Source: Malacoraja senta
Lineage: Eukaryota
Reading direction: 5' to 3'
Assembly (NCBI GenBank): GCA_038087875.1
Contig: JAXLNO010004500.1
Location: 124,001 to 188,000 of the forward strand
Length of the DNA stretch: 64,000 nt
Made by a program: the position numbers and the translations under genes. Shown here piece by piece: positions 5,167-44,239 of this stretch (the first letter of the stretch is position 1; each line of letters begins with the position of its first letter). Under the pieces are notes generated by a model, which worked only from the letters and a program-made list of their open reading frames with translations, ran no database searches and was not told the DNA's origin.

Positions 5167-5427
5167 GGCCTCACACACTGATCTATTACTACACCCTGAA
5201 CCACAGGAGTACTCATCTACCAGAATATAGTGTCGTGGGTGTACTGGACGGTTGTGAGATACAGTATTATGACAAAAACATGGTCATTACAGTTCCAAGA
5301 CAGAAATGTATGGCGGCTGCATTTGACAGGAATTACTGGGTAACAAATACGGTCTCTGAAACTGGTTTCCATGGAATCATCAAAGGGCAAGTCGATGAAT
5401 GGATGCGGAGGCAGAACGAAACAGCAA
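5167..5427 (+). CDS. MHC class I-like heavy chain, alpha1 exon
   Basis: 261-bp phase1/phase1 exon (ctag|GG...A|gttagt) encoding GPHTLIYYYT...PEYSVVGVLDG...YYD...PRQK.M...DRNYW...RRQNETA. It keeps Y7, Y59, R84 and the N86 glycosylation sequon (HLA-A2 numbering, aligned by eye). Confidence 0.93.
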
Positions 5428-5559
5428 GTTAGTTCATTCATTTCAATACAATTGGAGTGTGATCAATGTTCATAAAAAAACATCTCAAAGAAATTTCTCG
5501 CTGTGCCAGAGACCCAGGTTTGATCCTGACTACACGTTCTACCTGTGAACACAGATATT

Positions 5560-5960
5560 TCATTGTATCATTGTATTGTATATCTTTATTGTCATTTCCT
5601 GAGTATTCGCATACCCAGAGGAAACAAAAAAACATTCCTCAACCAGTGTCCATTTCAGTGTGCAGTAAAAAATAAATAGAAGCAAAAATACATATATCAT
5701 GAACAAATTAACACTCTACTCTACTAAACATCAACAGGCGTTCCGATCGGCAGCGGCACGACAGTGGCTCTGCTGCAGTGTGTCCAGGTTGGTGGTTGGT
5801 GCACGATACTTTGGCAGGGGACAAAGTCCGTTTATCAGTCTTATAACCTGCGGAAAGAAGCTGAGGAGCATCCTGCTGGTTTTGCACCTAATGCTCCGGT
5901 ACCTCTTCCCAGATGGCAGGATGGAGAATATGTGATGCGATGGGTGGTAGGGGTCTTTGA
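5560..5960 (-). mobile_element. Rex1/Babar LINE 3' fragment
   Basis: TTTATTGTCA tail and a GGAAAGAAGCTG...CTCTTCCCAGATGGCAG block similar to 1490-1600. Confidence 0.65.
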
Positions 5961-6699
5961 CTCCAGGTGCTCCGGTTTCGTCCCATATCTTGAAAACGTG
6001 AGAGTTTGTAGGTTAATTGGGCTCTGTAAATTACTCTTGTGTGCTGAGAATGCGTGAGAAAGTGGGATTACATAGATGTGTAGGAAGGAACTGAAGGTGC
6101 TGGTTTACAGCAAAGATAGGCACAATGTGCTGGAGTAACTCAGCGGGACAGGCAGCATCTCTGGATACAAGGAATGGATGACTTTTCAGGTCAAGACCCT
6201 TCCTCAGACAGAGTGTTTCCCCTGACTTACTCCAGCATTTTGTGTCCATTTTGGGATAACATAGAACTAGTGTGAAAGATGATCGATGGTTGGCATGGAA
6301 TTGGTGGGCAGAATGGCCCATTTCCATGCTGAGTTACTACCCTAAGAACTGCAGATGCTGCAAATGTGAAAGAAAAACCAAAAATGTCATTGTCTGATGG
6401 CTTCATTGTCAGTTTATCACCATGGAAACCTGTCTACCTTATCAGTGATACCCGCTATGTCCAACCATGCCTCCCACTCCTGTCTGTAACTTACACATTC
6501 TCACAATTCTGAAGCATTAATTTTGTTTCTCTTTCCATAGGTTCTGTTGAACTTGCTGTGTGTTCCAGCATTTTACAAATAATTGAAATGTTGGTGGCTT
6601 TTCGAATGGTTAAAATCCCTTGCGTACCTCACCAATTGTTTTTACTTTTATTGACAAATTTTGAAAGAAAAGTAGTGTGAAATATTTAAAGGATAACCT

Positions 6700-6922
6700 A
6701 AATGGCATTGTGGTTCAGCCGTAGTGATACTGCCGTAGTGCCAGAGACCCAGGGTTGATCCTGGCCTCAGGTGCTGTCTGTACAGAGTTTGTACGTACTC
6801 CCCGTGACCTGCGTGGGATTTCCCCGGATGCTCCGGTTTCCTCCCACACTCCAAGCCTGTATGCCAAAGGGGATCACTGGACACTGTGGACCCTAAGGGC
6901 TGTTTTCGTGCTATATCTCTAA
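6700..6922 (+). mobile_element. HE1/V-SINE-like SINE
   Basis: Head, GGATGCTCCGGTTTCCTCCCACACTCCAA core and a shortened tail. Confidence 0.8.
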
Positions 6923-7519
6923 ATTATCTTGGGCACCAATTGTAAAGTAAGCTGTCCAAATCCGTCTGCACCACACTTGTACATCCATATAATTTGCAAT
7001 TGGACATGTTTTATATTGTAAATCAATAAGTCCTATCACCATTACTGTGTTAATTCAATGACATTCGTAGTGTACCATTGAACAAAGCAGGACTAGACGT
7101 GGGGGAACCATCGTGAGGTGGGGGACAAAGGAGGACCTGGTGTGGGAGACTTTATAACTTTGTCGGTGCCCTTTATGTGAAGAATCTTTACATACGTTGG
7201 GTTTACAAAACAAAGAATTTCACTGTGACTTATCACATGCTACAATAAAGTGTCATTCATTCATGATTAATTATTTCTGAAAACATTGCTTTTTGTTACC
7301 TCTTCCGTTACACATTAAACAAATTATATTATTAATCTTTAACTGGACTAAAACAGGGTGAGGGTGCAAACAGGGAACAATACATCAAAATATTATGCAC
7401 TGGGACAATCTTTGTGCTCAGAGAGTGGTCAGCATATGGAATGACCTGCCAGAGAATGGAGTTGCGGCAGGTACAATAACAATATTTATAAGACCCATGG
7501 ACAGGGACATGCATAGGTA

Positions 7520-7985
7520 GATAAAAGTGCTGGAGAAACTCAGCGGGTGAGGCAGCATCTATGGAGCGAAGGAAATGGGCAACGTTTCGGGCCGAAAATC
7601 CTTCTTCAGACTGATGTGAGGGTGGGGGAGAGGGGGGGGGCGCAGGAAAAAGAAAGGGAAAGGTGGAGCCAGTGGGCTGAGGGAGAGCTGAGATGGGGAG
7701 GAGAAAGTAAGGACTACCTGAAATTAAAAAAGTCAATGTTCATACCGCTGGGGTGCAATCTGCCCAAGCGAAATATGAGGTGCTGCTCCTCCAATTTACG
7801 GTGGTCCTCACTCTGGCCATGGAGGAGACCGAGGGCAGAAAGGTCGGATTTGGAATGGGAGGGGGGAGTTGAAGTGCTGATCCACCGGGAGATCAGGTTG
7901 GTTGTTGCGAACCGAGCGGAGGCGTTCTGCGAAACGATCGCCAAGCCTGCGCTTGGTCTCACCGATGTAGAGCAGCTGACATCTA
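7520..7985 (-). mobile_element. Penelope-like element 3' fragment (GIY-YIG C-terminus plus terminal repeat)
   Basis: Minus strand encodes SHSKSDLSALGLLH...RKLEEQHLIFRLGRLHPSGMNIDFFNFR, homologous to the + strand copy at 17640-18483. Confidence 0.85.
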
Positions 7986-8834
7986 GAGAGAAACGTTTTG
8001 AATGATGTCTACCCATTGCAGGGTAAATGGGACTAGCTTAAATGGGGTATCTTGATTAGCATGGACAAGTTGGGCCAAAGGGCTTGTTTCCCTGCTGTGT
8101 GACTCTCTATGATTGCTTTATAGCAAAGAGCGCTGCTGCCTCACAGCTCCAGTGATCCGTGTTCAATCATCTCCAGTGCCGTCTGCGTGGAGTATAAGCA
8201 TTCTCCCTGTGACAATGTGTGTTCTCCAGTTTCCTCCCACATACCTAAATGTGTTGATTTAGTAGATTAAACCACCGCTGAAAATAGGTGGATTTGTGGC
8301 ATTGATAGAAATGAGGAAGATCCGTTTTGGGGAAAATTAGTGTTGGAATGGTTTTGTTCTCTGGGCTAGAGTGGGCTCAGGAGGCTGAAAGGCCTCTTTC
8401 TCTGTCACATGGATTTATGGGCAGTTATTTATCATTGAACTGCCTTCTTTCTCATTTTAGTCAACAGTGTAAAATTGAACTAATTGTCTGGATTGAACTA
8501 TTTAACAATTGTAGATGAAAGGAAGAGCAGAGGCTGCTTTCCTCCACACACAAAGTGCTGAGGAACTCAACGGGTCAAGTGGCATCTTTGGAGAACATCG
8601 GAAGGCAGATATTTCGGGTGAGGATCCTACTTCAGACTGAAGTTGGGTCACATTAGAACATGCTTTGTACTCACACTCACAGTCCAGTGTTAGTTTTCAA
8701 GGATTTTTTGATAGTCACAGCTTGTAGTTGTTACATATTCAGCAGAGAGAAGACGAGACAAACTAAAGCACCTGCAAAACACAACTAAAAGACCGCAGAA
8801 GGAAGCTAGAAAAGAAGGCTCTTATCTAAACAAC

Positions 8835-10825
8835 GTACTTTCAAGAGAGAGTTAGATTTAGCTCTTAAGGCTAAAGGAATCAAGGGATATGGGGGAAAAG
8901 ATTAGTTAAAACAAATGTAGGTCCCTTGCAGTCAGAAACAGGTGAATTGATCATGGGGAACAAGGACATGGCAGACCAATTGAATAACTACTTTGGTTCT
9001 GTATTCACTAAGGAAGACTTAATTAACTGCCGAAAATAGCAGGGGACCGGGGGTCAAATGAGATGGAGGAACTGAGTGAAATCCAGGTTAGCCGGGAAGT
9101 GGTGTTAGGTAAATTGAATGGATTAAAGGCCGATAAATCCCCAGGGCCAGATAGGCTGCATCCCAGAGTACTTAAGGAAGTAGCCCCAGAAATAGTGGAT
9201 GCATTAGTGATAATTTTTCAAAACTCTTTAGATTCTGGAGTAGTTCCTGAGGATTGGAGGGTACCTAATGTAACCCCACTTTTTAAAAAGGGAGGGAGAG
9301 AGAAAACGGGGAATTACAGACCAGTTAGTCTAACATCGGTAGTGGGGAAACTGCTAGAGTCAGTTATTAAAGATGGGATAGCAGCACATTAGGAAAATGG
9401 TGAAATCATTGGACAAAGTCAGCATGGATTTACGAAAGGTAAATCATGTCTGACGAATCATAAAAAATTTCGAGGATGTAACTAGTAGAGTGGATAAGGG
9501 AGAACCACTGGATGTGTTATATCTGGACTTTCAGAAGACTTTCGACAAGGTCCCACATAAGAGATTAATATACAAACTTAAAGCACACGGTATTGGGGGT
9601 TCAGTATTGATGTGGATAGAGAACTGGCTGGCAGACAGGAAGCAAAGAGTAAGAGTAAACGGGTCCTTTTCAGAATGGCAGGCAGTGACTAGTGGGGTAC
9701 CGCAAGGCTCAGTGCTGGGACCCCAGCTATTTACAATATATATTAATGATTTGGAAGAGGGAATTGAATGCAAAATCTCCAAGTTTGCGGATGACACGAA
9801 GCTGGGGGGCAGTGTTAGCTGTGAGGAGGGTACTGGGAGGCTGCAAGGTGACTTGGATAGGCTGGGTGAGTGGGCAAATGCATGGCAGATGCAGTATAAT
9901 GTGGATAAATGTGTGGTTATCCACTTTGGTGGCAAAAACAGGAAAGTAGACTATTACCTGAATGGTGGCCGATTAGGAAAACGGGAGATGCAACGAGACC
10001 TGGGTGTCATGGTACACCAGTCATTGAAAGTAGGCATGCAGGTGCAGCAGGCAGTGAAGAAAGCGAATGGTATGTTAGCATTCATAGCAAAATGATTTGA
10101 GGAGCAGGGAGGTTTTACTGCAGTTGTTCAGGGTCTTGGTGAGACCACACCTGGAGTATTGCCTACAGTTTTGGTCTCCTAATCTGAGGAAGGAAATTCT
10201 TGCCATAGAGGGAGTACAGAGAAGGTTCACCAGACTGATTCCTGGGATGTAAGGACTTTCATATGAAGAAAGACTGGATAGACTCGGCTTGTACTCGCTA
10301 GAATTTAGAAGACTGAGGGGGGATCTTATAGAAACTTACAAAATTCTTAAGGGGTTGGACAGGCTAGATGCAGGAAGATTGTTCCCGATTTTGGGGAAGT
10401 CCAGAACAAGGGGTCACAGTTTAAGGATAAAGGGGAAATCTTTTAGGACTGAGATGAGAAAAACATTTTTACACAGAGAGTGGTGAATCTCTGGAATTCT
10501 CTGCCACAGAATGTAGTTGAGCCCCGTTCATTGGCTATATTTAAGAGGGAGTTAGATGTGGCCCTTGTGGCTAAAGGGATCAGGGGTTATGGAGAGAAGG
10601 CAGGTACAGGATACTGAGTTGGATGATCAGCCATGATCATATTGAATGGCGGTGCAGGATCGAAGGGCCGAATGGCCTTCTCCTGCAACTATTTTCTGTG
10701 TTTCTATGTTTCTAAAAGCAGGAATGGGGTACTGCTTCTAGATGCAGGCATGATCATATTGAAAGGCGGTGCTGGCTCAAATGGCCGAATGGCCTACTCC
10801 TGTGCCTATTTTTCTATGTTTCTAT
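8835..10825 (+). mobile_element. CR1 LINE, 5'-truncated (RT domain and 3' UTR)
   Basis: KSPGPD, NYRPVSLTS, YLDFQK.FDKVPH, GVPQGSVLGP and KFADDTKL motifs with stops and frameshifts. (TTCTATGT)n-type tail near 10700 and a second tail copy to 10825. Confidence 0.93.
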
Positions 10826-11991: not shown

Positions 11992-12364
11992 TAAAAATAC
12001 CGAGGAAGGGTAGCGCAGCTACACATCACTGGATATCTTTAACCTGTTCAATCACTGGATATCTTTAACCTGTTCAATGCCACCACCGAGTACACTAGGG
12101 ATCATGGCCAATAGTGAAAAATAAACTTGGCTGTGAACAGCTTAATGGTCTCCATATTTTAGAGAAAGCCTTCAATGCCCATGAGGGGTGAGCCATATTA
12201 TATCTATGTTTCTCTAAATATAGGAAGCACTTTTGTGGTAAAAGATGGGGCAGCTCGGGCCTCAAAAAGATCCAACCTTATGTGCAGCTTTACATTTGTT
12301 TATATGCAATAAGCAAAAAGAACACAATAGAAGATAAAACATGACAATAACTATAAGCAAAGCC

Positions 12365-14890: not shown

Positions 14891-16664
14891 ATGTCTTCCA
14901 AGACGCGCACGTATAGTGAAACATTTCACAAGTTGGGCTTCACAAGCATTGTTCCAAATCCGTGGTCAAGCCGCAATGTGTTCTCTGTGCCAAGGTTTTG
15001 AGTCACGAGAGCATGAAGCCCAGCAAACTGAAGATCCATTTGGAGTCTTGTCACAGTAACCTGGCGGGAGATGGCGTGGACTATTTCAAACGAAAAGAAG
15101 CCATACTCAAGGGATCCCACATCTATTCAACGGGTCACTCGCTCATCAAAATGAAGCAGCGTTGGAGGCTTCATACTAGATTGCTTATCGAATTCGCACA
15201 GACAAAGAAACCTCACAGCATCGGTGAAGAGCTTATCAAGCCACGCCTTCTCGAAACAGCGAAGTTGGTGCTGGGAGAAGAGCAGTCAAACAAGTTCAGG
15301 CAGATTTCCCTTTTGAATGACGGAGCCAAAAGTAGAATCTCGGATATGAGTAATGATATTCTGCTGCAAGTAGTGAGGGCTGTGACGAGAAGTCCAGTGT
15401 ATTCACTGCAACTGGGCGAGTCAACAGATGTTGCCTCATGTTCCCAACTGCTAGTCTACGTTTGTTACCTCAATGGAAAAGCCATGACGGAGGAGGAGGA
15501 GTACCTGTTCTCGGAGCCATTGGCTACTACCACTCGGGGAGAAGATGTGTTCAGAATGCTGGAAGCCTTCCTCATCAAACATGAGCTTGGCTGGAAATGC
15601 CTTGTCGGGATGTGTACAGATGGGGCACCTTCCATGGGCGGTTGCAGATCCGGTTTCCAAGCCTTCGTGAATGATGTCGCTCCACATGTCTCCTTCCCCC
15701 ACTGCATGATACATCGCCATGCTTTAGCGATGAAGACTCTCCCTCTTGGTCTTCGAGAAGTGCTTTCAGATGTGGTGAAGATTGTGAACCACATCCGAGA
15801 GTATGCAAAAAACTCAAGAATCTTCAAAGCGATGTGTGAAGAAATGGGCGCCAATTTCACTATTCTGTTATTCCACACAGAGGTGCGCTGGCTTTTGCGT
15901 GGTAAAGTTCTCAATCATGTGATTCAACATCGAGAGGAAATAGCGTTGTTCTGGGAGAGAAGGGGTGCTGAGAAGGAGAATCAGCTTCATGAAAAGATGC
16001 AGGTTGAACTGTTCATGATGAAGGTTGCTTACTTGGCTGACTTCTTCGCCGAGGTGAATTCCTTGAACCTGTCACTTCAAGGAAACCTCCCAATGGCAAA
16101 GTGGCAGCATTCAGGAGGAACCATTACCAGAGAAGAGTCCAGGACGGTGACTCGACTATCTTCCCTGAGATGACGACTCTCCTGGATGCTACGCCTGATG
16201 CTGAATGCCACTTCCATGAGGAGATCTCAACCCACCTTCTGGCAATTAGTGAAGCCATCGAACGTTACTTCCCCGGACTGGACGACCGCTCTCGTGATCA
16301 GTGGATCTTCTGACCCTTTTCCGTTGAAGGCGGTGCCATCAGCGATACTGACGTGACTGCGAAGGTTGAATTTTACCGAATTCGTGAAGATGCGCAACTC
16401 AAGAGTGACTTCATGGAACAAGAGCTCGCCACGTTTTGGCTGAAAGTGAAGGACTGTCCTGCACTTTCGAAGAGGGCCCTGACCCTATTGGTCCTGTCCC
16501 CCTCAACCTCTCACTGTGAGGGTGGATTCTCAACTATGGTAACTCTGAAAACGAAGGTACGCAATAGGCTTGTGATCGACACTGACATGAGATGCTGCCT
16601 GTCGAGCATTCGTGCTCGTTTTGATTGCCTGATGACTGCGAAGCAATTTCAGCCATCCCATTGA
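14891..16664 (+). pseudogene. hAT transposase pseudogene (ZBED5/ZBED8/SCAND3-like)
   Basis: BED finger KPQCVLC...LKIH.ESCH, LGESTD (first catalytic D appears changed to G), [27 protein letters not shown] and a terminal QPSH*. Frameshifts and an in-frame stop near 16311. Confidence 0.9.
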
Positions 16665-19223: not shown

Positions 19224-19499
19224 ATTATCACTACGTTCAAGGACAGTTTGGTTGTGAGGTGAACGATCACAGTCCCACTGTAGGGATATTGAAGTTGGTT
19301 TTTGATGGAAGATATGCATTTAGTTTTGATAAGGACAAACTAAAGTGGACGGTGCATGATCCAATAGCTGAGCCCTTCAAAGAGAAATGGGACAAGAATG
19401 AAAAAATGAACCGTTATTTCAAGAGCTTGTTAGAACATGACTGTGTGGATCTATGGCTTACATACTATGCAATTGGAAAGACATACCTGACCAGAAAAG
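19224..19499 (+). CDS. MHC class I-like heavy chain, alpha2 exon
   Basis: 276-bp phase1/phase1 exon (ttttctttcag|AT...G|gtgagt) encoding YHYVQGQFGCEV...FDGR...KWT...KEKWD...LEHDCVD...TYYAIGKTYLTRK, with the C101-C164 pair, K146, W147 and Y171. Confidence 0.95.
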
Positions 19500-25610: not shown

Positions 25611-26547
25611 TCATTCAGAAGCCTGATTTTCTCCTCGGTTATCAAGTTTCCGAGTAAGCCAGTTGGTCCTCTAACCTGCCCACCATTCAATATGACCATG
25701 GCTGACGTTCCTCAGGCATCAACTCCTGTTCGATGTCAGTTCCTCATTGCACTCAGTTCTCCAATTTAAGTTTAAATTAAGTTAACTACCGCCACATTAA
25801 ATGTTTCCAATGATTTTGTCTTCACAAATCTCTGGCGCCAGAGAATGACCACACTCTGCAAAAAGAGATTTTGTAAACAAATGACTGGTCTCTTTTATCT
25901 CTTATTGAAGAGGAGTGAAAATACTGCCAATTTTAAGCTTGTCCCCTCCCCAATTGGCCCTCATTTTGTAACTTGTCAATTATTTATTATTGTCAATAAT
26001 ATGCCCTAGTGAAAAGATTTGCCGTTGGTATTAGTTTATTATTGTCACATGAACTGAGATATAGTCAAAAGTTTGTCTGTGTGTTATCCAATCAGATCAT
26101 ACTACACATGTGCAATCAAGCCATCCACAAGTAGATCAGTGCAAAGGGAAAAATATTCAGAGTGCAGAATATCGGGTTACTATATCATAGCATTACAGTT
26201 ACAGAGAAAGTGCAGATCAAAAAGAGTTGCAAGGATCACAATGAGATTGGTTGGAAGATCAGGACAACATCTTATGTTACATGAGAATCATTCAGTAGTC
26301 CAATAACAGTGGGGAAGAAACTGTTCCTGAATTTAATGGTACGTACTTTCAAACTTTGTTGTGTACTGTCTTAACAGGGAGCGTACGATCCCTTTTAAAC
26401 CACGCGGTTGGTTGATGGGACGAAAGAGGCAAAATGGGGCAGATGTGGACAGTAACTTGGTTGTTGTAGTAGACTGAAGAATATTTTGTGGTGGGTGACT
26501 GTGCAAGTTTTACTGAAGATGAAAATAACCATCTTACTGTCTTGTAG

Positions 26548-26814
26548 TTTCCCCTGAGGTATCTCTCGCTGCCCGCCCTGATGATCATTCAGTCCTGTAC
26601 TGCACTGTGTTTGGATTTTACCCACCGGCCATCAATGTCAGCTGGTTGCAGAATGGTCAACATGTATCTGAGACCAAATCTTCTGGGGTCATACCCAACA
26701 ACGATGGAACATATCATCTAAAGTCTGTCCTTGAGTATGATCCATATGATGGGAAACAGTATTCCTGTCATGTCGATCACAGCAGCCTGCCCGGTGGGAA
26801 GACCATCATCTGGT
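26548..26814 (+). CDS. MHC class I-like heavy chain, alpha3 (C1-set Ig) exon
   Basis: 267-bp exon (cttgtag|TT...TGG T|gtaaga) encoding VSPEVSL...LYCTVFGFYPPAINVSWLQNG...PNNDGTYH...YSCHVDHSSL...IW, with the canonical C, FYP, W and YxCxVxH motifs. Confidence 0.95.
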
Positions 26815-27129
26815 GTAAGAACATTAAATATTCATTCATAGATAATCATTATCTTCTGTTGTTTCCATTTTAATCATTGTGACTACATCCCATATTCCAA
26901 GATGCTTAAACTTTCTTTGTTTAGTGGTGTTGCTCTAAGCAATCACGTAATCAGCACCCACTCTCGACATGAGCAGAAGACTTTGTCAACAGAAAATTTA
27001 TCAAAAGTAAATAAATAACTAATATACAAGGAAGGAGTATTTGAGATTCTCAGTGGTGGAACTGAAATCCATGAAAGGTATGTTTAAATAAAAAATGAAT
27101 CTTTCCTCATGATGTGATTAACAGCAAGG

Positions 27130-27830
27130 CACTGGGGGAAGTACATGCCCCAATCCAAATCAATGGTCCGAAGCGGAAATGATTGAGAGCTTCATGTTCC
27201 TTGGCATGAATTTATCCAATATTCGGTCATGGACTGGCCACATAGCCAAGGGGGCACACCGACACTTCTACTTCCTCCGGAGACTGAGAATATTCATCAT
27301 GTCTCTGGTGACTCTAGCAAACATCTATAGATGCTGCTAGAGAAAGCATGTTGTTGGGTTGCATCACATCTTGATTTGGGAACTGCACTGCCCAAGCCTG
27401 CAAGAATATACAAAGAGTTAAAGATCATCACACAGCCCAGACTTCCCACTATTGATTCAGTCTACACCAGGTTGCCTTCGAAAACGAGACTTATCCCACC
27501 CCGGTCATTCCTCCTTCCTGCTCCCATCAGGCAATAGGTACAGAAAGTTGAAAGTATACACTGCCAGACTCAGGAACACGCCCTTTCCATCTGTTAACAG
27601 GCTTCGGGTCCTTCCATAATGTAGGTTCAATGCCCGATTCACCTCAACCTCATTGCACATTGTCTATGGAACTGATGCGTTACAATGCTGAGAACTATAT
27701 TCTGTACTCTGTATCCTCCTCTTTGCTCTATCTATTGTTTTTGAGTTTGTATTTATGTATAGTTTTATAATTTGTTTGGATAGCATACAAAACAAACCTT
27801 TGCTCTATATTTTGAAACATCTGGCATTAA
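27130..27830 (+). mobile_element. Degraded Rex1/Babar LINE 3' fragment
   Basis: Remnant GACTCAGGAACACGCCCTTTCCATCTGTTAACAGGCTT (RLRN.FFP...RLL-like), then a tail ending AATAAAAC. Confidence 0.6.
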
Positions 27831-29487
27831 TAAAACAAAACCTAATGAAGTAAGTTCCCTGACGCAAGTTACAGATTCAGCAATTAAAAATATAACTGCC
27901 TGACAAACAGCGATCGTAGTAGTTTGAATCCAAGTATGCTGCACTAACCTACACAAATGTTCACTTTTGAAGATTCCCTCGAACAATGCACAACTAAGGA
28001 ATCTGATGTTTCACTCTGAAGACTGTTGACATACTCCAGAACTTAATTTCCAACCTATCTATGTATCATCAGCAATCTAGGCTACAGCGCCATCAGTCCC
28101 TTCATCTGCTCTTAATACCAACGATAAGTAGTTCACTTTCTTGCATTGATTCCCAACCTACCGTTGCAGTTTCCCAACCTGAACACTCCTTTAAGACAAC
28201 TCTCTGCTTGCTCTTAATTGTTTTTTTCCATTCATGCTAATTATTACCCCCAATGTCATGCCTTTGCATCACTTGATTGATATCTTATGAAAATCCAGAT
28301 ATTGTGCGACATCTGGTGGTCAGGCCACTTATTGCTAGAACCCTCGTCAGGGGAGCTGGGACTATCACATGACAGGGTTTTGGTGGGAGTTGGTGATGAA
28401 TCAGTCGACAGTCAACTGGTGTGCCCGATTACAACGGCAGGAACTTTGCTCAAGTCCTTACTAAACGCGAGTGGGCCAAAACTGTATTTCTTTAAAAAAA
28501 CATTGATTTGTTCACGACGTTTGGATCTCTACAATATATTGTATTTCTTTTGTTTCTCATTCCAATTTTGTTACCTATTCTGCTTTTCCATCATTTTGTT
28601 TTTGAATTTTAGACTGTGCACACCTGCTGCTCGAATATACATTGTCTACGGGTTCCTGTTGCATTTTCAAAGAATTCTAATCAATTTCTCAAACAAAGTT
28701 TGAAGAAGGGTCCCAAAACGAAACGTCACCTGTCCATGTGTAAGAAGAAACTGCAAATGCTGGTTTACACCGAAGATGGACACAAATTGCTGGAATAACT
28801 CAGCTGGTCAGCCAGCATCTCTGGAGAAAAGGAATAGGTGATGAATCCATGTTCGCCAGAGATGCTGCCTGTTCCGCTGAGTTACTCCAGCATTTTGTGT
28901 CTATTATGTATATTCTTGCCACTGACTGGTTAGCACGTAACAAAAGCTTTTCACTGTACCTCAATACATGTGACAATAAACTAAACTAAAGCTTTTGTGT
29001 AAATCAGTATCTGCATCTCTTTCTTTCTACAATTTTCCTGTTAATGCCCTGATAATGCACTTTATTGTTTTGTTATTATTTAAATGTTCTGCCATTATTG
29101 AAAGGAATCCAGCATTTTCCCCAAAACAAATGTTAGTTTACATAGGGTTAAAGCTTTCTGCTTTCAATTCACCTTCTTTCTTGAATTAAGTTGTGGCTGT
29201 GATGGTGCCATAGATCATAGAGTTGTACAGAACATATATTGTCCCATGCCATGCTGCAGAACTCCGTGATTCAAAACACCATATCATCTTATATACCTTG
29301 AAAAGCGCCAAAGATAGACACAAAATGCTGGAGTAACTCAGCGGTCAGGTAGCATCTCTGGAGAAAAGGAATAGGTGGCATTTCTGGTCGAGACCCTTCT
29401 TCACTCTGAAGTCTTCAGACAGTGCCTATCTATTTAGCTGCACAGCTTAACAATTGATTTGTAAAATTATGCATTCTTATTTTTCAG

Positions 29488-29595
29488 AAGGAAATAGGAA
29501 GAAAGACAGGCACATAGGCCTTATTGCCGTGTGTGTGCTGATATTGCTGGCTATTGTCTTGGCAGTAATTGTTTGGTGGAGAAAAAAGAGGAGAG
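29488..29595 (+). CDS. MHC class I-like connecting peptide/transmembrane exon
   Basis: 108-bp phase1/phase1 exon (ttttcag|AA...G|gtaag) encoding GNRKKDRH-IGLIAVCVLILLAIVLAVIVWW-RKKRR, a hydrophobic helix with a basic stop-transfer. The junction with alpha3 reads TAA (see findings). Confidence 0.88.
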
Positions 29596-32964: not shown

Positions 32965-35900
32965 TTAAAAATATTTTTATTGTTTCTTTTCCAAAAAACA
33001 AAAACAAAAATAAAACATAAAAAACAGAGCAAAAATAATAATGATAAACATAACAATGGTATTGATACATAGGGATCAGGATTACATTAATAACAGGTAT
33101 AACCTAATATGAGACCAGTGTCAAAATACACAATGAATATAGACCTCTCGGTCTCTATGTAAAATATAGTTAAATCTTTAAAAGGAAACATAAATGTTAA
33201 AAAAAAAGCAAAGATAAAAAGACAAAAAGAAAAAGAAAAAACAAAACCCCCCGAAACTAATTTTTTTTTTAAATTGATAATAATAAAATAAGAATAAAAA
33301 TAAAATAAATAAATAAAACAAAACAGAGCAAAACCGAATCTGAACTGAGAAATTCAACAATTTAAGTCTGTTTGTCGTCAAGTCCGTTCAACCTATGAAG
33401 GTAAAATAATTTTTATAACGGTTAAAGAGGGTTCAATTTATGTTGTATGAAAGTGTTCAATAAATTTTCCCCAAGACTTATCAAATTTAACCAAGGGTTC
33501 AACAATGTCACTTCTGATTTTTTCTAAATTTAAACTTGATATCGTTTCAGAATACCACTGGAGTGTGGTCGGAGGGTTGGAATCTTTCCATTTAAAGAAA
33601 ATAAATCTTCTTGCAATTAATGTGGTAAAAGCAATCAACCGATGGGCGGAGTGGGACAAATGAATAGAATCTAACATTGGTAACCCAAAAATTGCAGTAA
33701 TAGGATGAGGTTGTAAATCTATACCCAAGACTACCGAAATAGTATCAAAAATGTCTTTCCAATATTTTTCCAAAAGAGGGCAGGACCAAAACATATGGGT
33801 CAGTGATGCCACTTCAGAGTTACATCTGTCACAGGTAGGATTTATATGACCATAAAAACGAGCTAACTTATCTTTTGACATATGAGCTCTGTGAACCACC
33901 TTGAATTGTATCAATGCGTGTCTTGCACACATTGAAGAGATATTAACTAATTGAAGGATCCTCTCCCATTTCTCTATAGATAAAGACATTTGGAGTTCTC
34001 TTTCCCAGTCATTCTTAATTTTATCAAATGTATCTATTTGTAATTTTAAAATCAACTCATGAATAGTCATTATTAATCCTTTCTGATAAGGGTTCAACTG
34101 TAAAAAAAATCCAAAATTTCGGGTTGATGTGGTAGTGGAAAAGGGGGTAGTTCCTTTTGTCTAATTTGTAAATATCTAAAAAAAGTGTGAATTAGGTAAG
34201 TTATATTTATTGGAGAGTTGTTCGAAAGACATAAAACAACCCTCCAAAAACAAATCACGAAAAGATACTAATCCCTTCCTCTTCCATAACAAAAAAACTT
34301 GATCAGTACTAGATGGTTGGAAGAGAAATTTGGATAAAATCAGATAGTCCAAAAAACTTACGAAATTGAGACCGTATTCGGAACGTATGTCTTATTATTG
34401 GGTTCGTCATATATTTATTCAATCTCGTAATTGTAAATGGTAACGAAGTCCCTAGAATAGAAGCCAATTATAGCCCTTGTAAGGAATCACGTTCTAGGTT
34501 TATCCATCCAGGGCATTGGGTATCTTCTAAATCTTTTGTCCAAAATGTTAAATAACGAACATTGACTGCCCAATAGTAGAGTCTAAGGTTCGGCGATGCC
34601 AAACCACCAAATTGTTTTGATTTCTGTAGGTATTTTTTACCTAGTCTGGGATTTTTATTCTGCCATATATATGAAGACATTTTAGAGTCTATAATATCAA
34701 AGAAAGATTTGGCAATAAAAATTGGTATTGTCTGAAATAAATACAGAAATTTAGGTAAAATGAACATTTTAATAGCATTGATTCGGCCAATTAAGGATAA
34801 GGACATTGGTGACCATTTAGTGAACTGATGTTTAATATGGTCAATTAAAGGAATAAAATTAGCTTTAAATAAATCCTTGTGTTTCTTGGTGATCTTAATA
34901 CCTAAATATGTAAAACTTTCGGTAGTCAATCTAAATGGAAACTGTCCATAACTCGAAACAAAATTATTTAATGGGAAAGCTCACCCTTACTAAGATTTAG
35001 TTTATAAACAGAAAAACTACTGAATTGATTAAGTAATGCTACTATTGCCGGAATAGATTTCTCAGGGTTAGAAATAAATAATAACAGATCATCTGCATAA
35101 AGAGATAGCTTATGTGTCTTATTCCCGCAGACAATACCAAAAATATTAGGGGATTCCCTAATAGCAGTGGCTAAAGTTTCCAAAGCAATATCAAATAGTA
35201 AAGGACTTAAGGGACAGCCCTGTCTAGTTCCTTGAAAGAGCCTGAAAAAAGGGGATCTCTGATTATTAGTAAATACAGAAGCCTGAGGTATAAGATATAG
35301 CAGTTTGATCCAAGAGATAAATTTTGGACCAATCTTAACTTTTTCAAGTATATTGAATCAGTATTCCATTCTACTCTATCAATAGCCTTCTCGGCATCAA
35401 GTAAGATGACACATTCTGGGGTTTTATTAGATGCTGTATATACAATATTTATTAATCTCCTAACATTAAAGAATGAGTAACGATTTTTAATAAAACCTGT
35501 CTGATCTTCAGAGATAATTTGCGGTAAAATCTTTTCCAATCTCATAGGTAATATTTTGGAAATAATTTTAAAATCTACATTTAACATTGATATAGGTCTA
35601 TATGATGTCACTTCAGTAGGGGCTTTATCTTTTTTTTTAATTAAAGAAATAGAAGCTTCATAAAAAGCTTGTGGTAATCTATTCCTTAAAAAGGCTTCTT
35701 TAAATACCTTGCATAGCCATGGAGACAATAAATTTGAGAAATACTTTTAAAATTCTACTGTAAACCCATCTAAACCGGGAGCTTTACCAGAATTCATTGA
35801 AAAAATTGCTTTCTGTATTTCTTTTTCCGTGATGGGTTCATCCAACAACAGAGACTCATTGTATGGTAAATTTGGTAAGTTCAGTTTCTTTAAAAACTCA

Positions 35901-38900
35901 TGCGTTATATTGGAATCAGTAGCAAAATCTGATTGGTATAGGGAGGTATAAAATTCCTGAAAGGATTTATTAATTTCGTCATGGTCTACAGTTACTGTAT
36001 CATCCCGTTTACTCACTTTAGTAATCTGACGCTTGGCCGACACTGCTTTCAATTGATTAGCAAGTAATTTACCAGATTTTTTCGCCATTTATATAAAATT
36101 TACTTTTGGTTTTAAGTAACTGGTTCTCAATCGGTGATACTAATAACAAATCATATCTCAATTGAAGTTCAACTCTATTCTTATAGAGCTCTAAACTAGG
36201 AGCTTTTGAATATTTTTAATCAATTTCTTTAATCTCGTCAGCCAACGTGCGTGTTTCTTTTTGTGTTTGTTTTTTTAATCCCGCGGAGTATGAAATAATT
36301 TGTCCACGAATATATGCCGTAAAAGCATCCCAAACTATACCATTGGATATCTCTTCATTAGAGTTTGTCAAGAAGTAAAAAGCAATCTGGACTTTCATAA
36401 ACTTAATAAAGTTTAAGTCTTGAAGCAAAGTAGCATTAAATCACCATTGTTTAGCACTAAACTTGGAATCAGGTAGTTTGATCAATAGTTTCACTGGTGC
36501 ATGATCAGAAATAGCAATTGTATCATACTCACATGCAATGACCGATGGAACTAGCCGAGAATCTAGTATAAAATAGTCGATCCTAGAATAACTATGATAT
36601 ACATGAGAGAAAAATGAAAATTCTTTGTCATTTGCGTTTAAGAATCTCCAAATTTCTAACATTCCCGAGTCAAGTAAAAAATAATTAATAAAATTAGCTG
36701 ATTTATTTGGAAGCACATGATCAGATGTAGACCTATCAATCGAGGGATTCAAACAGCAATTGAAGTTTCCACCCATTATTAAAAAGTGTTCATTTAAATT
36801 GGGATAGGATGCAATTAACTGTTTAAAAAACTCAGGGTGATCAATATTTGGTGCATAGACATTCACCATATGACTTTTTGCCTATAAAGGACACTGGTAA
36901 TCACCAAGAATCTGCCATATGGATCAGAAATTGTTTCATGTTGAACAAACGGAATTGAGGAGTCAATAAAAATAGAGACTCCTTTCACCTTAGCCTGTGA
37001 ATTTGAATGAAACTGCTGTCCTCCCCAAAACTTGAAAAATCGTGACTTGTCTTCTTGCCTTACATGAGTTTCCTGAACAAAAATAATCTGAACATTTAGT
37101 CTGTGAAGAACTTTAAAAAAAAAATCCTCTTAATGGGATGGTTCAAGCCATTCACATTCCATGAAAGGAAATTAGTAACTTTATCCATATTGCTTGTAAA
37201 AAATCATGTGGGATGTAATGGGTTAATTTCTTGAAGCCTAAAAGTTCATAATACTGGAAGAAGAAAAATCTAGGGCAGAGCCAGAAGTGACGACATTTCA
37301 GCCAATTTTGTAGTTCAGAATTTGCACAAATGGAGATCACTAAATAGGGAACAAAAGACCCCTCCCCCCTCCCCCCTCCCACCCCTGTAGAACCCCAAAC
37401 TGACCAATAGACAGTCAGCAAACTACCTAATCTCCCCAATCCCATCTCCCAGTAACAGCGCTCAGCATAAAAAGAATAATATTTAACCACTACGTCATAA
37501 CACATTTGTTATTATCTCTTTGAGAGAGAAGGGAAAAAAATACAGACTGGCATGGAATGCTGCTTATTATTATCCAAGGTCAAAATATGAAAAACAAGAA
37601 CTGCGTTCTCTTAGTTTGTCTAACGACAGGGGAACACGAATTAACAAAGAAATTCTTAAAAGAATATATATAAAAGAAAAACAACTTGTCCAGTTAAATT
37701 CTTAATCATTACCAAACGAAATGTTGTCAAAATAGGAACAGTAAACCTCCAATTCTAACTTAATCAGCTATCAATTACTCCCCTTCCTCGTCGTAGCTCT
37801 TCAGACGCAGCTGGAGGCGTCTTGAGGAATGTTAAAAAATCGAAAGTTACCATTGAAAATCCGAATACGCAATCTAGCTGGAAATAATAGAGCTGGGCGC
37901 AGTTTTTTCTTATACAAATCAGACATTACATTATAAAAAGTATTTCTTATTTCCAAAAGCTCGTAACTATAATCAGGGACAAACCGAAACTTACATCCTT
38001 CATATTCAACCATACCCAACTTTTTTGTTGCCTGGAGAATATTCTTCTTCATTTGAAAATAATGAAACCGAATGATCAAATGTCTCGGTTTATTACCGGA
38101 TTTCTTCCCAATCCTGTGTGCGTTATCCAGTAACGGAAGGTTTTCATTGTGCTCAATGTTGAATGTTTTGCTTTATCATTTTAGAAGCATATTTTATACC
38201 GTTATCTCCTTCTTGGCCTTCCGGCAAACCAACAATTCGTAAATTCAATTGACGGCTTCTGTTTTCTAAGACCATATTTTTAGACTTGTATTGCTGAAGT
38301 GCTCAAGTGTTTTCATTCATTCTCCGTTCCAATTTTTCAATCTTCAAATCTCTCTCCTGTCCCAGGGTGCGCAAGATTTCAATTTGATCCTTTTGTTCAC
38401 GAAGTTCATCTTGTAACAAAGAGTTTTCCTTGGACTTCCTTCAAAGTAGTGGAGTTGGGGATGGCATCAAACAGAAAATTAGAAATGCGTGCAACAAAGG
38501 TAAAACAGTTATAATGGGTGACTTCAATCTACATATAGATTGGGTGAATCAAATTGGCAAGGGTGCTGAGGACGAGGATTTCTTGGAATGTATGCGGGAA
38601 AGTTTTCTAAACCAACATGTAGAGGAACCAACGAGAGAACAGGCTATTCTAGATTGGGTATTGAGTAATGAGGAAGGGTTAGTTAGCAGTCTTGTTGTGC
38701 GTGGCCCCTTGGGCAAGAGTGACCATAATATGGTTGAGTTCTTCATTAGGATGGAGAGGGACATTGTTAATTCAGAAACAAAGGTCCTGAACTTAAAGAA
38801 AGGTATCTTTGAGGGTATGAGAAGTGAATTGGCCAAGATAGACTGGCAATTGCTTCCTAATGGGTTGACGGTAGATATTCAATAGAAGGCATTTAAAGAC

Positions 38901-41100
38901 TGCATGGATGAACTACAACAATTGTTCATCCCAGTTTGGCAAACAAATAAATCAGGGAAGGTAGTGCATCCATGGATAACAAGGGAAATCAGGGATAGTA
39001 TCAAAACAAAAGATGAAGCGTACAAATTAGCCAGAAAAGGCAGCCTACCAGAGGACTGGGAGAAATTCAGAGTCCAGCAGAGGAGGACGATACATAATCT
39101 GCCGGAAATAGCAGGGGACCTGGGGTCAAATGAGATGGAGGCACTGAGTGAAATCCAGGTTAGCCGGGAAGTGGTGTTAGGTAAATTGAATGGATTAAAG
39201 GCCGATAAATCCCCAGGGCCAGATAGGCTGCATCCCAGAGTACTTAAGGAAGTAGCCCCAGAAATAGTGGATGCATTAGTGATAGTTTTTCAAAACTCTT
39301 TAGATTCTGGAGTAGTTCCTGAGGATTGGAGGGTAGCTAATGTAACCCCACTTTTTAAAAAGGGAGGGAGAGAGAAAATGGGGAATTACAGACCAGTTAG
39401 TCTAACGTCGGTAGTGGGGAAACTGCTAGAATCAGTTATTAATGATGGGATAGCAGCACATTTGGAAAGTGGTGAAATCATTGGACAAAGTCAGCATGGA
39501 TTTATGAAAGGTAAATCATGCCTGACGAATCTTAAAGAATGTTTCGAGGATGTAACTAGTAGAGTGGATAAGGAAGAACCAGTGGATGTGTTATATCTGG
39601 ACTTTCAGAAGGCTTTCGACAAGGTCCCACATATGAGATTAGTATACAAACTTAAAGCACACAGTATTGGGGGTTCAGTATTGATGTGGATAGAGAACTG
39701 GCTGGCAGTGACTAGTGGGGTACCGCAAGGCTCAGTGCTGGGACCCCAGCTATTTACGATATATATTAATGATTTGGACGAGGGAATTGAATGCAACATC
39801 TCCAAGTTTGCGGATGACACGAAGCTGGGGAGCAGTGTTAGCTGTGAGGAGGACGCTCGGAGGCTGCAAGGTGACTTGGATAGGCTGGGTGAGTGGGCAA
39901 ATGCATGGCAGATGCAGTATAATGTGGATAAATGTGAGGTTGTCCACTTTGGCGGCAAAAACAGGAAAGTAGACTATTATCTGAATGGTGGCCGATTAGG
40001 AAAAGGGGAGATGCAACGAGACCTGGGTGTCATGGTACACCAGTCATTAAAAGTAGGCATACAGGTGCAGCAGGCAGTGAAGAAGGCGAATGGTATGTTA
40101 GCATTCATAGCAAAAGGATTTGAGTATAGGAGCAGGGAGGTTCTACTGCAGTTGTACAGGGTCTTGGTGAGACCACACCTGGAGTATTGCGTACAGTTTT
40201 GGTCTCCTAATCTGAGGAAAGACATTCTTGTCATAGAGGGAGTACAGAGCAGGTTCACCAGACTGATTCCTGGGATGTCAGGACTTTCATATGAAGAAAG
40301 ACTGGATAGACTCAGTTTGTACTCGCTAGAATTTAGAAGATTGAGGGGGGATCTTATAGAAATGTACAACATTCCTAAGGGGTTGGACAGGCTAGATGCA
40401 CGAAAATTGTTTTCCGGTGTTGGGGAAAACAAGGGGTCACAGTTTAAGGATAAGGGGGAAATCTTTTAGGACCGAGATGAGGAAAACATTTTTCACACAG
40501 AGAGTGGTGAATCTCTGGGATTCTCTGCCACAGAATGTAGTTGAGGCCAGTTCATTGGCTATATTTAAGAGGGAGTTAGATGTGGCCCTTGTGGCTAAAG
40601 GGATCAGGGGGTATGGAGAGAAAGCAGGTACAGGATACTGAGTTGGATGATCAGCCATGAGCATATTGAATGGCGGTGCAGGCTCGAAGGGCCGAATGGC
40701 CTACTCCTGCACCTATTTTCTATGTTTCTATGTTTCTAATTTGGTCGAAACTCCTTCACCATTTCTTCCAAACTGCCAAATCTTGTTTTCATTTCATTTT
40801 TCAACTCATTTTTCAATTCATCGTTCATTTTCGATAATGCTTCTATGATGCTGGAATCAGAAGCTGCAGCTGTGGTTGTGGCTTTCCCCAGTTCCTTCTT
40901 TGGGGATCCTCCTTTCCTTCTTGTCTCCATCCTTTTCACGATTAAGGCGTGTAAAAGTGTTATCAACACTTTATGAACAGTTAGACGGTGTCTTGAAGTC
41001 AAATAGTCACCAGTAACATTCAAAGAGTGGTCAGTGGAAGTTCAAAGTTAAGGGAGCAAACGAGTTTGCAACCTTACAGCATGCTGCTGCTAGGAGAGTC
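32965..41100 (-). mobile_element. Near full-length L1 LINE, disrupted and split by a CR1 insertion
   Basis: ORF1 begins METRRKGG at 40930, is interrupted at about 40738/38445, and continues ENRSRQLNLRIVGLPE...IIRFHYFQ. ORF2 runs about 37185-33438 with APE (SWNVNGLN, NVYAPN, GG.FNC, YSRIDY, SDH) and RT (KAPG.DG, YRPISML, LDAEKA, LYADD) motifs. A-rich 3' end at about 32970. Confidence 0.92.
38445..40738 (+). mobile_element. CR1 LINE nested in L1 ORF1
   Basis: APE C-terminal part (MGDFNL, LDWVL, SDHN), a 521-aa RT ORF at 38904-40469 and a (TTCTATGT)n tail. Very similar to 8835-10710. Confidence 0.95.
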
Positions 41101-41629
41101 TAGTTATTGACATGTTATTGATGTTCATGATTATTCTGTTCTTTGTGCCTGGCCATTTTGACTTTGTCACATTTTACTTGGTTTATGATATTGTACAAGA
41201 TTTGCAATCACACCTCCCAATTGACTAAAATTATGCCAATTAACTAAATGCCTACTATGGCATTTAACTTATTGCATTATATTCAGTGCAGGGTAGAAGC
41301 TGCAGTTTTTAAAAAGGGCAAGTTTTTATTACATACTATGTGCTGTGTGCCGGGAAAGCACTGCCAGGGATGGTGGCGTCTGGGGTGCACCTTCGTGGGT
41401 GCATGGAGATGCAGGGGTTTGAGGGACATGAATCATTTGCAGGCAGATGCTGCCTAACTGGTGTCTGTACAACTGATCTGGAGGGATCTGATGGTCAGGC
41501 AGGGAATATTTCCAGTGACCCAATGGTGCTGAGTTCGCTGAATTTTACGGTGAATGGGAATGCCCCTGTAATAGAGGAACAGGTCCTTTGTCCAACAACG
41601 TTTGTGCTGAACATGACGCAACCTGAGGC

Positions 41630-42140
41630 AGAGTGGCGCTGCTGATAGAGCTGCTGCCTCAGTGCGTCATAGACATCAGTTCAATCGTAACCTCGGTTGT
41701 CGGCTGTGTGAAGTTTGCATGTATTCCCTATAACCGCATGGGTTTCCACTGTCCTCCAGTTTTCACACACATACTAAAGATGCCAAGTTTTATGGGTTAA
41801 TTGGTCTCAGTAATTTGACCCTAGTGTGGAAGCGAAAGTTAGATAACATAGAACTTGTGTGAAGGAAACTATTTGAAGGAGTATTGAATTTTTTGTTTAG
41901 TTTGGAGAGAGAGAATTGAAACAGACACTTCGGCCCACTGAGTCCGCACCAACTAACGATCACCCACATAAGCTAGGGACACAAGTCAATTAACCTACAA
42001 ACCTGCACATCTGTCTTTGGAATGTGGGAGGAAACTGGAGCGCCTGGAGAAAACCTATGCAGTCACAGGGAGAAGGTACAAATTCCGTACAGACATCACC
42101 CGTGGTCAGGATCAAACCCAGGTGTCTGGCGCTGTGCCTT
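41630..42140. mobile_element. Two HE1/V-SINE-like copies (about 41630-41860 +, 41895-42140 -)
   Basis: Head and core motifs in opposite orientations. Confidence 0.7.
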
Positions 42141-42269
42141 TATATCTGGAAGGAAGATGTTATGTGGGATGAATCAACAGTTAAAGCGAATAAACTAGTT
42201 GCATCTTTCTGAGTTCTGTTCTCTGCTATGCCATTTCTTTGTTGTCTAATATTTAATTTCCCTCCTCAG

Positions 42270-42310
42270 ATTATCAAAATATTCAACCAAAGCAGAACGT
42301 GCACCGCTAA
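42270..42310 (+). CDS. Candidate cytoplasmic (terminal) exon of the MHC class I-like gene
   Basis: Strong acceptor (tttaatttccctcctcag|). In phase 1 after the TM exon it reads D-YQNIQPKQNVHR*, with AATAAA at 42363-42368. It lies in unique sequence, but splicing is inferred. Confidence 0.5.
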
Positions 42311-44239
42311 CCAATCGCTGAGTAGAAGATTTCATGCATGTGATTAAAATGCAGGAACTGGAATAAATGGAAAGAGTTAAATTAAGTTTATCAAACATGA
42401 CAGAAATTCTCAATAGTCTGCCCTGCATTTGTACAAATTAGAGCTATCTAGCAATTTATGTTGATAACAGCTGATATGACTGAGGCCTCAACTCCTTTAC
42501 TGTGCTTATTCCACATAAGACACAATTCCCTGTTCTTTTATAATATATCCACGCATTATCCATCAATTCACCACCACATCATGCCTCTTTAATACATTCA
42601 TGTTAACTCTGTTTCTTGTCATCTCCAAGGGACACAGAACCAGTGATTTCAGCCATTCATGGTTAGGCAACACTTGCTTATTCCAGAAATCTCTTCTAGC
42701 TGATATCAAATATTAATATATCCTTTCTTAAATTTGAGGACCAAGCTGTGCACAGTGCTCCTGATTTGTCCTTAGCAACATCATGTTCCATAATTACAAT
42801 AGTAACCTACCTTTGAATGCTAATCACCTTCTGAGTTGTGTGCTGCATCTACCTGCTGGCTTTTTGTTTTGCACTTTAAACACTTGAATATCTTGCTCCA
42901 CTCATTTGCTATCTCACTCCATTTAGATAATAGCTTCCTTTGAATTGCTCTTACCAGAGTGTGTGAGCACATATTTTCCATCATGAAACTCCATTTGCCA
43001 TGTTTATGTTCATCTAACAAAGAGTCATGGAGCCATATAGCATGGAAGCAGGTAGTTCAGCCTAATGCTCCAAGCTGAACAAGATGCTACATTTAGGTTA
43101 GTCACATTTGCCAGTGTTTGGCCCACTTTCCTCTCAACATGTTCTATCCATGTACCTGTCCAAGTGTCTTTTCAATGTTGTTATTCTGCCTTCGCTGGCA
43201 GCTCATTCCATACACCCAGTAACCTCTTAGTAGAAAAGGTTGCCTCTCAGGTTCCTACTAAATCTTCCTCCTCACCTTAAACCCAGGGGTGCAGTGCTGC
43301 CGGAGCTCACCTGAGCACCGATCCGGCACCTCTGTTAAAGAAAAAATAAACAGCGTGGAATTTTAACTAGCGGATGTGTGGTCGGGGTAACCTGATTAAA
43401 AGAGGGGTAAGGGGAAGATCCATCACTACTCAGGTTCCCTGTAGGAGGAGGGGAACACTATGATGCAGCAGAGACAGACCATGTGATGTGTGCATCGTTT
43501 GTGGTTGTGGGCCTGGAGCTGAGCCTGGAACTCTGGTGGGTGGGTGTGTAGGTGAATGGGTGTGTAGGTAAATGAGTGTGAGGGTGAGAGTGTGTGTGTG
43601 AAGGCCCAGAGCTGCAGGATAGTCGGGGTGAGTCGGTGTCTTGCCGGCACCTCTGTAAAAATACATGATAACAGCCTTTTTCTTTACTTGCTTCATAATT
43701 ATATTTCATGATAATCAGTGAGTGCAACCGTGCAATATTTTGTCATAATTAAATTAAGTATTATATGTTTTAAAGTACTAGCTATACACTGGGATGTAGT
43801 AATAGGCTATAATCTTGTTTGACCCTCTAGGCACACGCGTCAATCTTTCAAAGCAGCGGAGTGACAATCACAGACGATAATTACTGAAGTATGATAGTAA
43901 GATGCATAAAGACTTAGAACTACCAGCTTGATCCTTTTATGAGGGTGGGAGCGGAGGGCACGTAATCCCTCAACGTTACTCCTCATAAAATAAAGATCAA
44001 ACTTCAAACTTGGTAAGTTCTCGTTTAATCTTACTATTTTACTTCGGAGTCATGTGAGTGACTACGTGAAGATTTCAAAGCTCTGTGATTTCACACCGTG
44101 GATTCAAATCCAGGTGTTCACTGCATTGATTGACTCTATTTGAGTAAGCACAATCAACAATGCATAACCACAACATTTGAATGTAATCAGTTAACGGTTT
44201 TATTTATTTTAATAAAAGTAACAAAATTAGGCCCATTTA

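Follow-up and report, generated by a model that had tools for sequence, protein, structure and literature searches.

The DNA analyzed here, a 64,000-nucleotide stretch from Malacoraja senta (the window), contains exons 2–6 of one skate copy belonging to an ancient elasmobranch lineage of class Ib genes of the major histocompatibility complex (MHC). The exons lie on the plus strand and encode alpha1 (5167–5427), alpha2 with its conserved Cys pair (19224–19499), alpha3, an Ig domain of the C1-set (26548–26814), the connecting peptide, transmembrane (TM) segment and basic stop-transfer sequence GNRKKDRHIGLIAVCVLILLAIVLAVIVWWRKKRR (29488–29595), and a short cytoplasmic tail, (D)YQNIQPKQNVHR, followed by a stop codon (42270–42311, with the YQNI codons at 42272–42283 and the terminal TAA at 42309–42311). 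Pfam assigns alpha1 and alpha2 to MHC_I and alpha3 to C1-set (E 3e-20). All five exons read as phase 1 with AG acceptor and GT donor borders, the last with its AG acceptor: with the border marked by a slash, these are ...gtgtctAG/GGCCTCAC and ACAGCAA/GTtagt for alpha1, ...ttctttcAG/ATTATCAC and AGAAAAG/GTgagt for alpha2, ...tcttgtAG/TTTCCCC and ATCTGGT/GTaaga for alpha3, ...tatttttcAG/AAGGAAAT and GGAGAG/GTaaga for the TM exon, and ...ccctcctcAG/ATTATCAAAATATT for the terminal exon. The initial annotation of this DNA had reported four clean phase-1 exons. Their places, phase and borders stand, but the description as clean does not hold: alpha3 ends in T (26814), and the codon split over intron 4 between alpha3 and the TM exon (26814–29489) reads TAA, a premature stop directly after the ectodomain (...GGKTIIW-stop). 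The splice sites, the frame, both Cys pairs, the N-glycosylation site, the TM segment and the tail are otherwise intact, and joining the TM and terminal exons predicts a tail of ...WWRKKRR-D-YQNIQPKQNVHR-stop.

The coding exons are followed by a 3′ untranslated region (3′UTR) in two parts, a proximal one at 42312–43283 (AATAAA at 42362–42367) and a distal one at 48859–49605 (AATAAA at 49495–49500), separated by an insertion at 43284–48858. Searching positions 1–5166 for signal-peptide-like open reading frames (ORFs) with a phase-1 donor, and by blastn with the first 151 nt of the transcript contig described below, gave no convincing leader exon. The leader is expected beyond the left end of the window: it precedes alpha1 by 31.8 kb in Amblyraja and by 14.8 kb in Rhinoraja, and only 5.2 kb of sequence lies before alpha1 here. 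Neither a second class I gene nor spare exons were found in the window by tblastn with the four exon peptides.

We gathered relatives by searching 1.8 billion representative proteins with the alpha1 exon, followed by cluster look-up. The matches were class I-like proteins of skates, rays and sharks, and the cluster members included three 334-aa proteins predicted on short Logan contigs. One of these contigs (L001, 3455 nt) has a coding sequence identical to the Leucoraja erinacea model XP_055521885 except for 7 N-terminal residues, and we regard it as spliced mRNA because the gene spans tens of kilobases and the contig is too short for genomic DNA. By blastn, L001 matches the window at 5165–5427 (cDNA 152–414, 92.8% identity), 19226–19499 (cDNA 417–690, 94.5%), 26546–26813, 29487–29595 (cDNA 957–1065, 95.4%) and 42268–42550, and 3′UTR homology resumes at 42549–43283 and 48859–49605; proximal cDNA 1064–1347 and 1555–2310 align at 84–86% and distal cDNA 2661–3455, which runs to the end of the contig, at 80.5%. 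Over the homologue of the 29595/42270 junction, L001 reads ...CAGGAGAG/ATTATCAAAATATTC..., joining the TM exon straight to the YQNI exon; its sequence over the two critical junctions is ...ATCATCTGGG/AAGGAAATGG... and ...AACAGGAGAG/ATTATCAAAATATTCAACC.... The terminal exon with a ...WWRKKRR tail, proposed from the letters alone together with a transcript check of this junction, is thus borne out by a spliced transcript that joins the homologous TM and tail exons, and the 29595/42270 junction holds at the level of the gene family. The same exon borders occur in the Amblyraja radiata (L002) and Rhinoraja longicauda (L003) loci; the TM donor (AGAG/GTAAGA) and the last-exon acceptor (...CCCTCCTCAG/) are identical in Amblyraja, to whose locus the introns are colinear at 84–93% identity. 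Contigs from one sequencing run (X1) cover exons only, ending at 26546, 26813, 29487 and 29595, and differ from the window at copy-specific sites, a pattern that is that of spliced RNA from a close relative.

The premature stop arises from a single base. The codon split between alpha3 and the TM exon consists of T (26814) and AA (29488–29489), so that the joined product reads ...GGKTIIW-stop-GNRKKDRHIG..., while the base homologous to 26814 is G in L001, L002 and L003, giving GAA and a Glu that is present in 24 of 26 relatives. The alpha3 exon ends ATCTGGT/GTAAGA in the window versus ATCTGGG/GTAAGA in Amblyraja, and the transcript reads ATCTGGG/AAGGAAAT. We considered whether nearby strong splice sites could rescue the window copy and rejected this, as every such combination yields a stop: a tandem acceptor three bases on (29491) produces TGA, and an alternative donor two bases upstream (26812) leads to stops with both strong acceptors. 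Only two kinds of event keep the frame: use of a weak, purine-rich acceptor (29506, or 29498 together with donor 26812), or skipping of the TM exon. Because the stop precedes the TM exon, the TM segment and tail of the window copy would not be translated as assembled. Between the stop and the last exon junction downstream there are 106 nt. By the usual 50–55 nt rule, the mRNA should therefore undergo nonsense-mediated decay.

Other changes accompany the stop. Compared with 27 family members, the window copy departs from near-invariant residues at three places: the stop itself, W48C (TGT at 5307–5309 versus TGG; W in 26 of 27 relatives) and A113V (19298–19300; Ala in 27 of 27 relatives), the two substitutions being unique to this copy. 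In addition, the 5.6-kb insertion at 43284–48858 splits the 3′UTR relative to Leucoraja and Amblyraja and is absent from L001 and L002. On the minus strand it holds ORFs at 44345–45235 and 45694–46680 for a reverse transcriptase and a tyrosine recombinase (Pfam RVT_1, Phage_integrase and Phage_int_SAM_4), domains by which we class the element as a DIRS-like retroelement. Taken together, the stop, W48C, A113V and the retroelement in the 3′UTR make a recent pseudogene or null allele the most likely state of this copy. We consider it probable, with some room for doubt, that the window copy is a pseudogene or null allele that was inactivated recently, that it belongs to a multicopy skate family within the class Ib lineage represented by the crystal structure 9CH4, and that its genuine tail exon now lies behind a stop.

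Several observations weigh against this conclusion. The T at 26814 is supported by the assembly alone, and the locus itself is in none of the sequencing runs compared (best word share 0.55–0.70), nor is any transcript tied to the window copy. When polarized with three skate sequences, the substitutions unique to this copy number only 9 (3 synonymous and 6 not), and its nonsynonymous-to-synonymous ratio is like that of other skate branches, with no statistical sign of relaxed constraint, although so few changes carry little information. The paucity of unique substitutions indicates either that inactivation was recent or that the T is an error. The gene could instead be intact, with the T due to faulty assembly or base calling, or present as a rare null allele in the sequenced animal, and with the locus normally giving a class Ib molecule that is bound to the membrane and has a functional YQNI tail; the otherwise intact splice sites, frame, Cys pairs, glycosylation site, TM segment and tail speak for this, as do the low number of unique substitutions at a ratio resembling that of functional relatives and the G shown by every contig from other runs. 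Those contigs (from runs X4, X5 and X6), however, also differ from the window at 26561–26562, 26666, 26744 and elsewhere, and because of these further differences in the alpha3 exon we attribute them to paralogues or other species rather than to this locus. An intact gene also fits poorly with W48C and A113V at invariant sites and with a 5.6-kb retroelement in the 3′UTR. Both damaging changes unique to the copy, W48C (base 5309) and Glu-to-stop (26814), are G-to-T transversions, which likewise counts against it. We regard an intact gene as possible but unlikely.

A second alternative takes the stop at face value and gives it a function: the copy would encode a secreted class Ib protein without a TM segment, either ending at TAA after alpha3 or skipping the TM exon in frame (...TIIW-Y-YQNIQPKQNVHR-stop). 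The stop falls exactly where the crystallized ectodomain construct ends (9ch4: ...GGKTVLW), skipping of the TM exon preserves the frame, a Scyliorhinus gene model shows the equivalent form (P0137: ...GKTVPW-DYNTV), and models from Leucoraja (P0122) and Rhinoraja (P0109) lack the TM segment, with alpha3 running past its donor into the intron. The isoforms of other species, however, are automatic gene models, and no transcript connects such a form with the window copy; moreover, with 106 nt between the stop and the last exon junction, decay of the message is predicted, and W48C likely destabilizes the fold. We judge a secreted product of this copy to be quite improbable. Bolder still, and marginally harder to credit, is the idea that skates turned some copies of an expanded CD1-like family into secreted lipid-binding proteins, with the window copy among them and not dead. 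Of note, read-through of the alpha3 donor in the window would give ...TIIWCKNIKYSFIDNHYLLLFPF-stop.

We next consider the lineage to which this probable pseudogene belongs. By far the best solved relative of each exon is 9ch4_A (E 5.6e-35 for alpha1, 9.9e-35 for alpha2 and 1.2e-35 for alpha3), a 268-aa chain annotated as "Ig-like domain-containing protein"; the next chains in the Protein Data Bank (PDB) for alpha1 and alpha2 are MR1, classical class I, ZAG and HFE at 1e-7 to 1e-12. Because 9ch4 is ~88% identical to the zebra shark (Stegostoma) orthologue (P0101), it derives from an orectolobiform shark. In a maximum-likelihood tree of 38 proteins, which included sister lineages and teleost and reptile class I and was evaluated with Shimodaira–Hasegawa-like approximate likelihood ratio (SH-aLRT) support, the window copy falls in a skate clade (100) as sister to Amblyraja plus Leucoraja, inside a batoid clade (99), and then inside a lineage of 29 shark and batoid rows (99) whose branching roughly matches the species tree. 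Two related batoid/skate sister lineages (P0004; P0140/P0141) and the teleost and reptile class I proteins fall outside. Ectodomain identity declines in step, from 94% in Amblyraja, 93% in Rhinoraja and 91% in Leucoraja to 60–64% in sharks, 38% in the sister lineage and 32% in a teleost class I protein. The window copy is monophyletic with annotated orthologues from 17 shark, ray and skate species, and the open frame from alpha1 to tail is interrupted in it by the TAA at the alpha3/TM junction; it belongs to the 9CH4 lineage by descent but is broken as assembled.

These results support part of what the initial annotation had proposed. A nonclassical MHC class I gene is supported by its nesting, at 99–100%, in the shark, ray and skate lineage; grouping with classical UAA finds no support (6lup_A at E 2.4e-7 in alpha1 versus 5.6e-35 for 9ch4); and the view that sequence by itself does not allow an assignment of the gene proved too cautious, given matches of each exon to 9CH4 at ~1e-35 and the same tree support. 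Its suggestion that the gene might belong to a reported CD1-like shark and ray lineage also fared well. UFA has been reported as a CD1-like MHC-Ib lineage in elasmobranchs (PMC10751288), and UFA/UGA are described as CD1-like, MHC-linked and lipid-binding, on the basis of a crystal structure and mass spectrometry (PMC10751288, PMC12562908). A crystallized, pan-elasmobranch, non-UAA lineage fits this published description, so the 9CH4 lineage can most probably be equated with UFA or UGA, the CD1-like lineages of sharks and rays. Either of the two names may apply: public records carry automatic names only, and our literature search found no paper naming 9CH4. The mentions of UFA/UGA that we found are only two, given as unpublished or personal communication, and the supplement of PMC10751288 carries no lineage labels. 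Concerning MHC linkage, no other genes were found in the window beside the class I copy. A further, earlier solved "MHC class I protein", PDB 8gm8_A (265 aa; E 1e-7 in alpha1), has PRQxWMA and LDDLQI-type alpha1 motifs in common with these lineages; it represents a different, distantly related shark lineage and may be the other member of the UFA/UGA pair. The lineage and its CD1-likeness are already on record, and the window adds a further, probably dead, member.

The tail encoded behind the stop is shared across the family. In 12 species of sharks, rays and skates from 8 orders, a YxxPhi motif occupies the same position, and the tails of credible full-length models consist of a basic run, one residue and then Y-x-x-(I/V): YQNI in Amblyraja, Leucoraja and the window, YQTI in nine Rhinoraja copies, YENI in Pristis and Mobula, YESI in Hemitrygon, YNVI in Stegostoma, YNAV in Heterodontus and Mustelus, YNTV and YNIV in two Scyliorhinus species, and YNVV in Cetorhinus. 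The initial annotation took absence of the motif from orthologues as a refutation, and the motif is conserved in them. Skate orthologue tails read DYQNI(Q/P)PNQNVPC and DYQTIQPNQNRRC, that of an intact skate copy reads RKKRRDYQNIQPNQNVPC, and a shark tail reads RRQRGYNVI; the tails of intact members are 9–19 residues long. In sharks the motif is the end of the protein, and batoids carry ~9 further conserved residues (...PNQNVPC). Counted from the end of the hydrophobic span, the tail Tyr is residue 7 (...VIVWW-RKKRRD-YQNI), and a Tyr 6–9 residues from the membrane is known to favour lysosomal delivery. The motif is absent from both sister lineages. Since we estimate the chance of one YxxPhi in a 13-residue tail at roughly 1/10, the motif counts as evidence because its position, the Y and the Phi are conserved while the x positions vary. 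Models from whale shark (GYSLT or GRQVFL) and Chiloscyllium (GMANFS), which end without a canonical YxxPhi, are a point against general conservation; several further tails are evidently mispredicted in gene models.

The signal could nevertheless serve something other than endolysosomal sorting, such as phosphotyrosine signalling, basolateral targeting, or plain internalization without lysosomal delivery. YxxPhi motifs are short and serve several functions, human CD1d and CD1c carry YxxPhi without using AP-3 (PMC5192300), two orectolobiform gene models have no Phi, and batoid tails carry 9 extra conserved residues after the motif. Against this reading stand the invariant position one residue after the basic run and ~7 residues from the membrane, the retention of the motif in 12 species while its x positions vary, and its place at the very C terminus in sharks, as in CD1b/c/d and LAMP-type lysosomal signals. 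We consider it distinctly unlikely. On present comparisons, endosomal sorting is a reasonable inference at the family level for the intact relatives, and so the proposal of endosomal trafficking, originally made for this gene, may be kept for them and not for the window copy, whose TAA precedes the TM exon.

We propose that intact members are type I membrane glycoproteins, composed of alpha1–alpha3, a TM segment and a short tail, that would reach the surface with beta2-microglobulin. The tail Tyr motif would bind the AP-2 mu subunit and drive internalization, by analogy with CD1b/c/d and LAMP-type signals, and AP-3 might send the molecules on to lysosomal compartments, such that cycling through endosomes and lysosomes would be where lipid ligands load. 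In the CD1 system, CD1b, CD1c and CD1d interact with AP-2 through their tails, and CD1b as well as mouse CD1d engages AP-3, which takes them to late endosomes and lysosomes (PMC5192300). In the window copy, replacement of G by T in the final position of alpha3 would have turned GAA into TAA, translation would end after the ectodomain, and the mRNA would be a target of nonsense-mediated decay; because translation would end before the TM segment, this copy would perform none of the trafficking.

At the family level, a class I lineage for which lipid binding is reported has retained a tyrosine sorting tail over several hundred million years. If the interpretation is right, cartilaginous fish already possessed the hallmark of CD1, the endosomal sampling of nonpeptide ligands, whether through shared ancestry or through convergence. 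The window copy is broken before the TM segment and so is no model of a functional gene; viewed alongside the many near-identical genes of Rhinoraja, it suggests that the family undergoes birth-and-death turnover in skates. In Rhinoraja longicauda, at least 10 annotated genes of the lineage (P0093, P0107–P0115; locus L003), which are >90% identical, map to a single chromosome of 41.5 Mb. Since UFA/UGA are called single- or low-copy in the literature, we read this as an apparent expansion specific to skates. In Leucoraja, P0004, of the 38%-identical sister lineage and with a tail lacking YxxPhi, and P0122, of the 9CH4 lineage, share one 127,421-bp contig, which shows physical linkage of the two lineages in little skate. 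The Leucoraja erinacea LOC129716032 models (P0094, P0116–P0120, P0123, P0124) fuse alpha1/alpha2 exons to a GPR139-like seven-transmembrane receptor and have the same receptor C terminus; they are probably chimeric annotation across neighbouring genes, and they pull a "GPR139" protein into the class I cluster.

Fragments of non-long-terminal-repeat retrotransposons (RVT_1, zf-RVT) crowd the introns and flank of the gene, lying at 9063–10095 and 38430–40469 on the plus strand and at 33441–36869 and 57324–57932 on the minus strand; the two plus-strand copies belong to the same family, of which several copies occur in the Amblyraja locus at 92–93% identity. In intron 2, at 14962–16664 on the plus strand, a 403-aa ORF is followed by more ORFs, without a Pfam match at E 0.001, and is possibly a decayed DNA-transposon gene. 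Three tandem arrays occupy the right side, with units of 109 bp (4.8 copies, 56076–56599), 30 bp (15 copies, 59527–59984) and 25 bp (a satellite of 116 copies, 61187–63993, reaching the window end), interleaved with N gaps at 58850–59023, 60247–60379 and 60940–61110.

Among known systems, the 9CH4 lineage itself is the closest: the window copy is about two-thirds identical to 9CH4 over alpha1–alpha3 with the same domain lengths, and its exons are arranged identically, down to the short tail exon of its own, but it differs in the TAA at the alpha3/TM junction, W48C and A113V. Compared with UFA/UGA as published, the difference is one of copy number, single or low versus the at least 10 annotated copies on one Rhinoraja chromosome. 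MR1 and classical class I, including the nurse-shark-type UAA 6LUP and grass carp 5H5Z, are the nearest solved relatives after 9CH4 and have Pfam MHC_I and C1-set domains in common with the window copy. The window alpha1 also keeps two Tyr and an Arg near its C terminus at the same columns as 6LUP (window residues 7, 57 and 82). These proteins differ in being only ~30–35% identical, in lying outside the lineage in the tree, and in E-values at least 25 orders of magnitude weaker than those of 9CH4.

The tail invites comparison with human CD1b, whose tail is RRRSYQNIP. The YQNI tetrapeptide is identical and likewise belongs to a basic tail that is very short and encoded by a separate exon, and a lipid-binding groove is reported in the literature for the 9CH4-type lineage, whereas skate tails have 9 more residues after the motif. 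CD1 orthology was considered and rejected: there was no CD1 chain among the alpha1/alpha2 PDB matches, and none outside the Ig domain, and the CD1-type family PF16497 (MHC_I_3) was absent for the skate orthologue and reached 29.8 bits, below the cut-off of 35, for Stegostoma, the best Pfam family being PF00129. The resemblance to the CD1b tail may be convergent. The LAMP-1 lysosomal signal, GYQTI at the C terminus, offers a second parallel, with YQTI in the Rhinoraja copies and G-Y-N-V-I at the C terminus in Stegostoma; the Tyr of the lineage, at ~7 residues from the membrane, lies within the 6–9 range, while skates have Asp rather than Gly before the Tyr and the batoid motif is not C-terminal.

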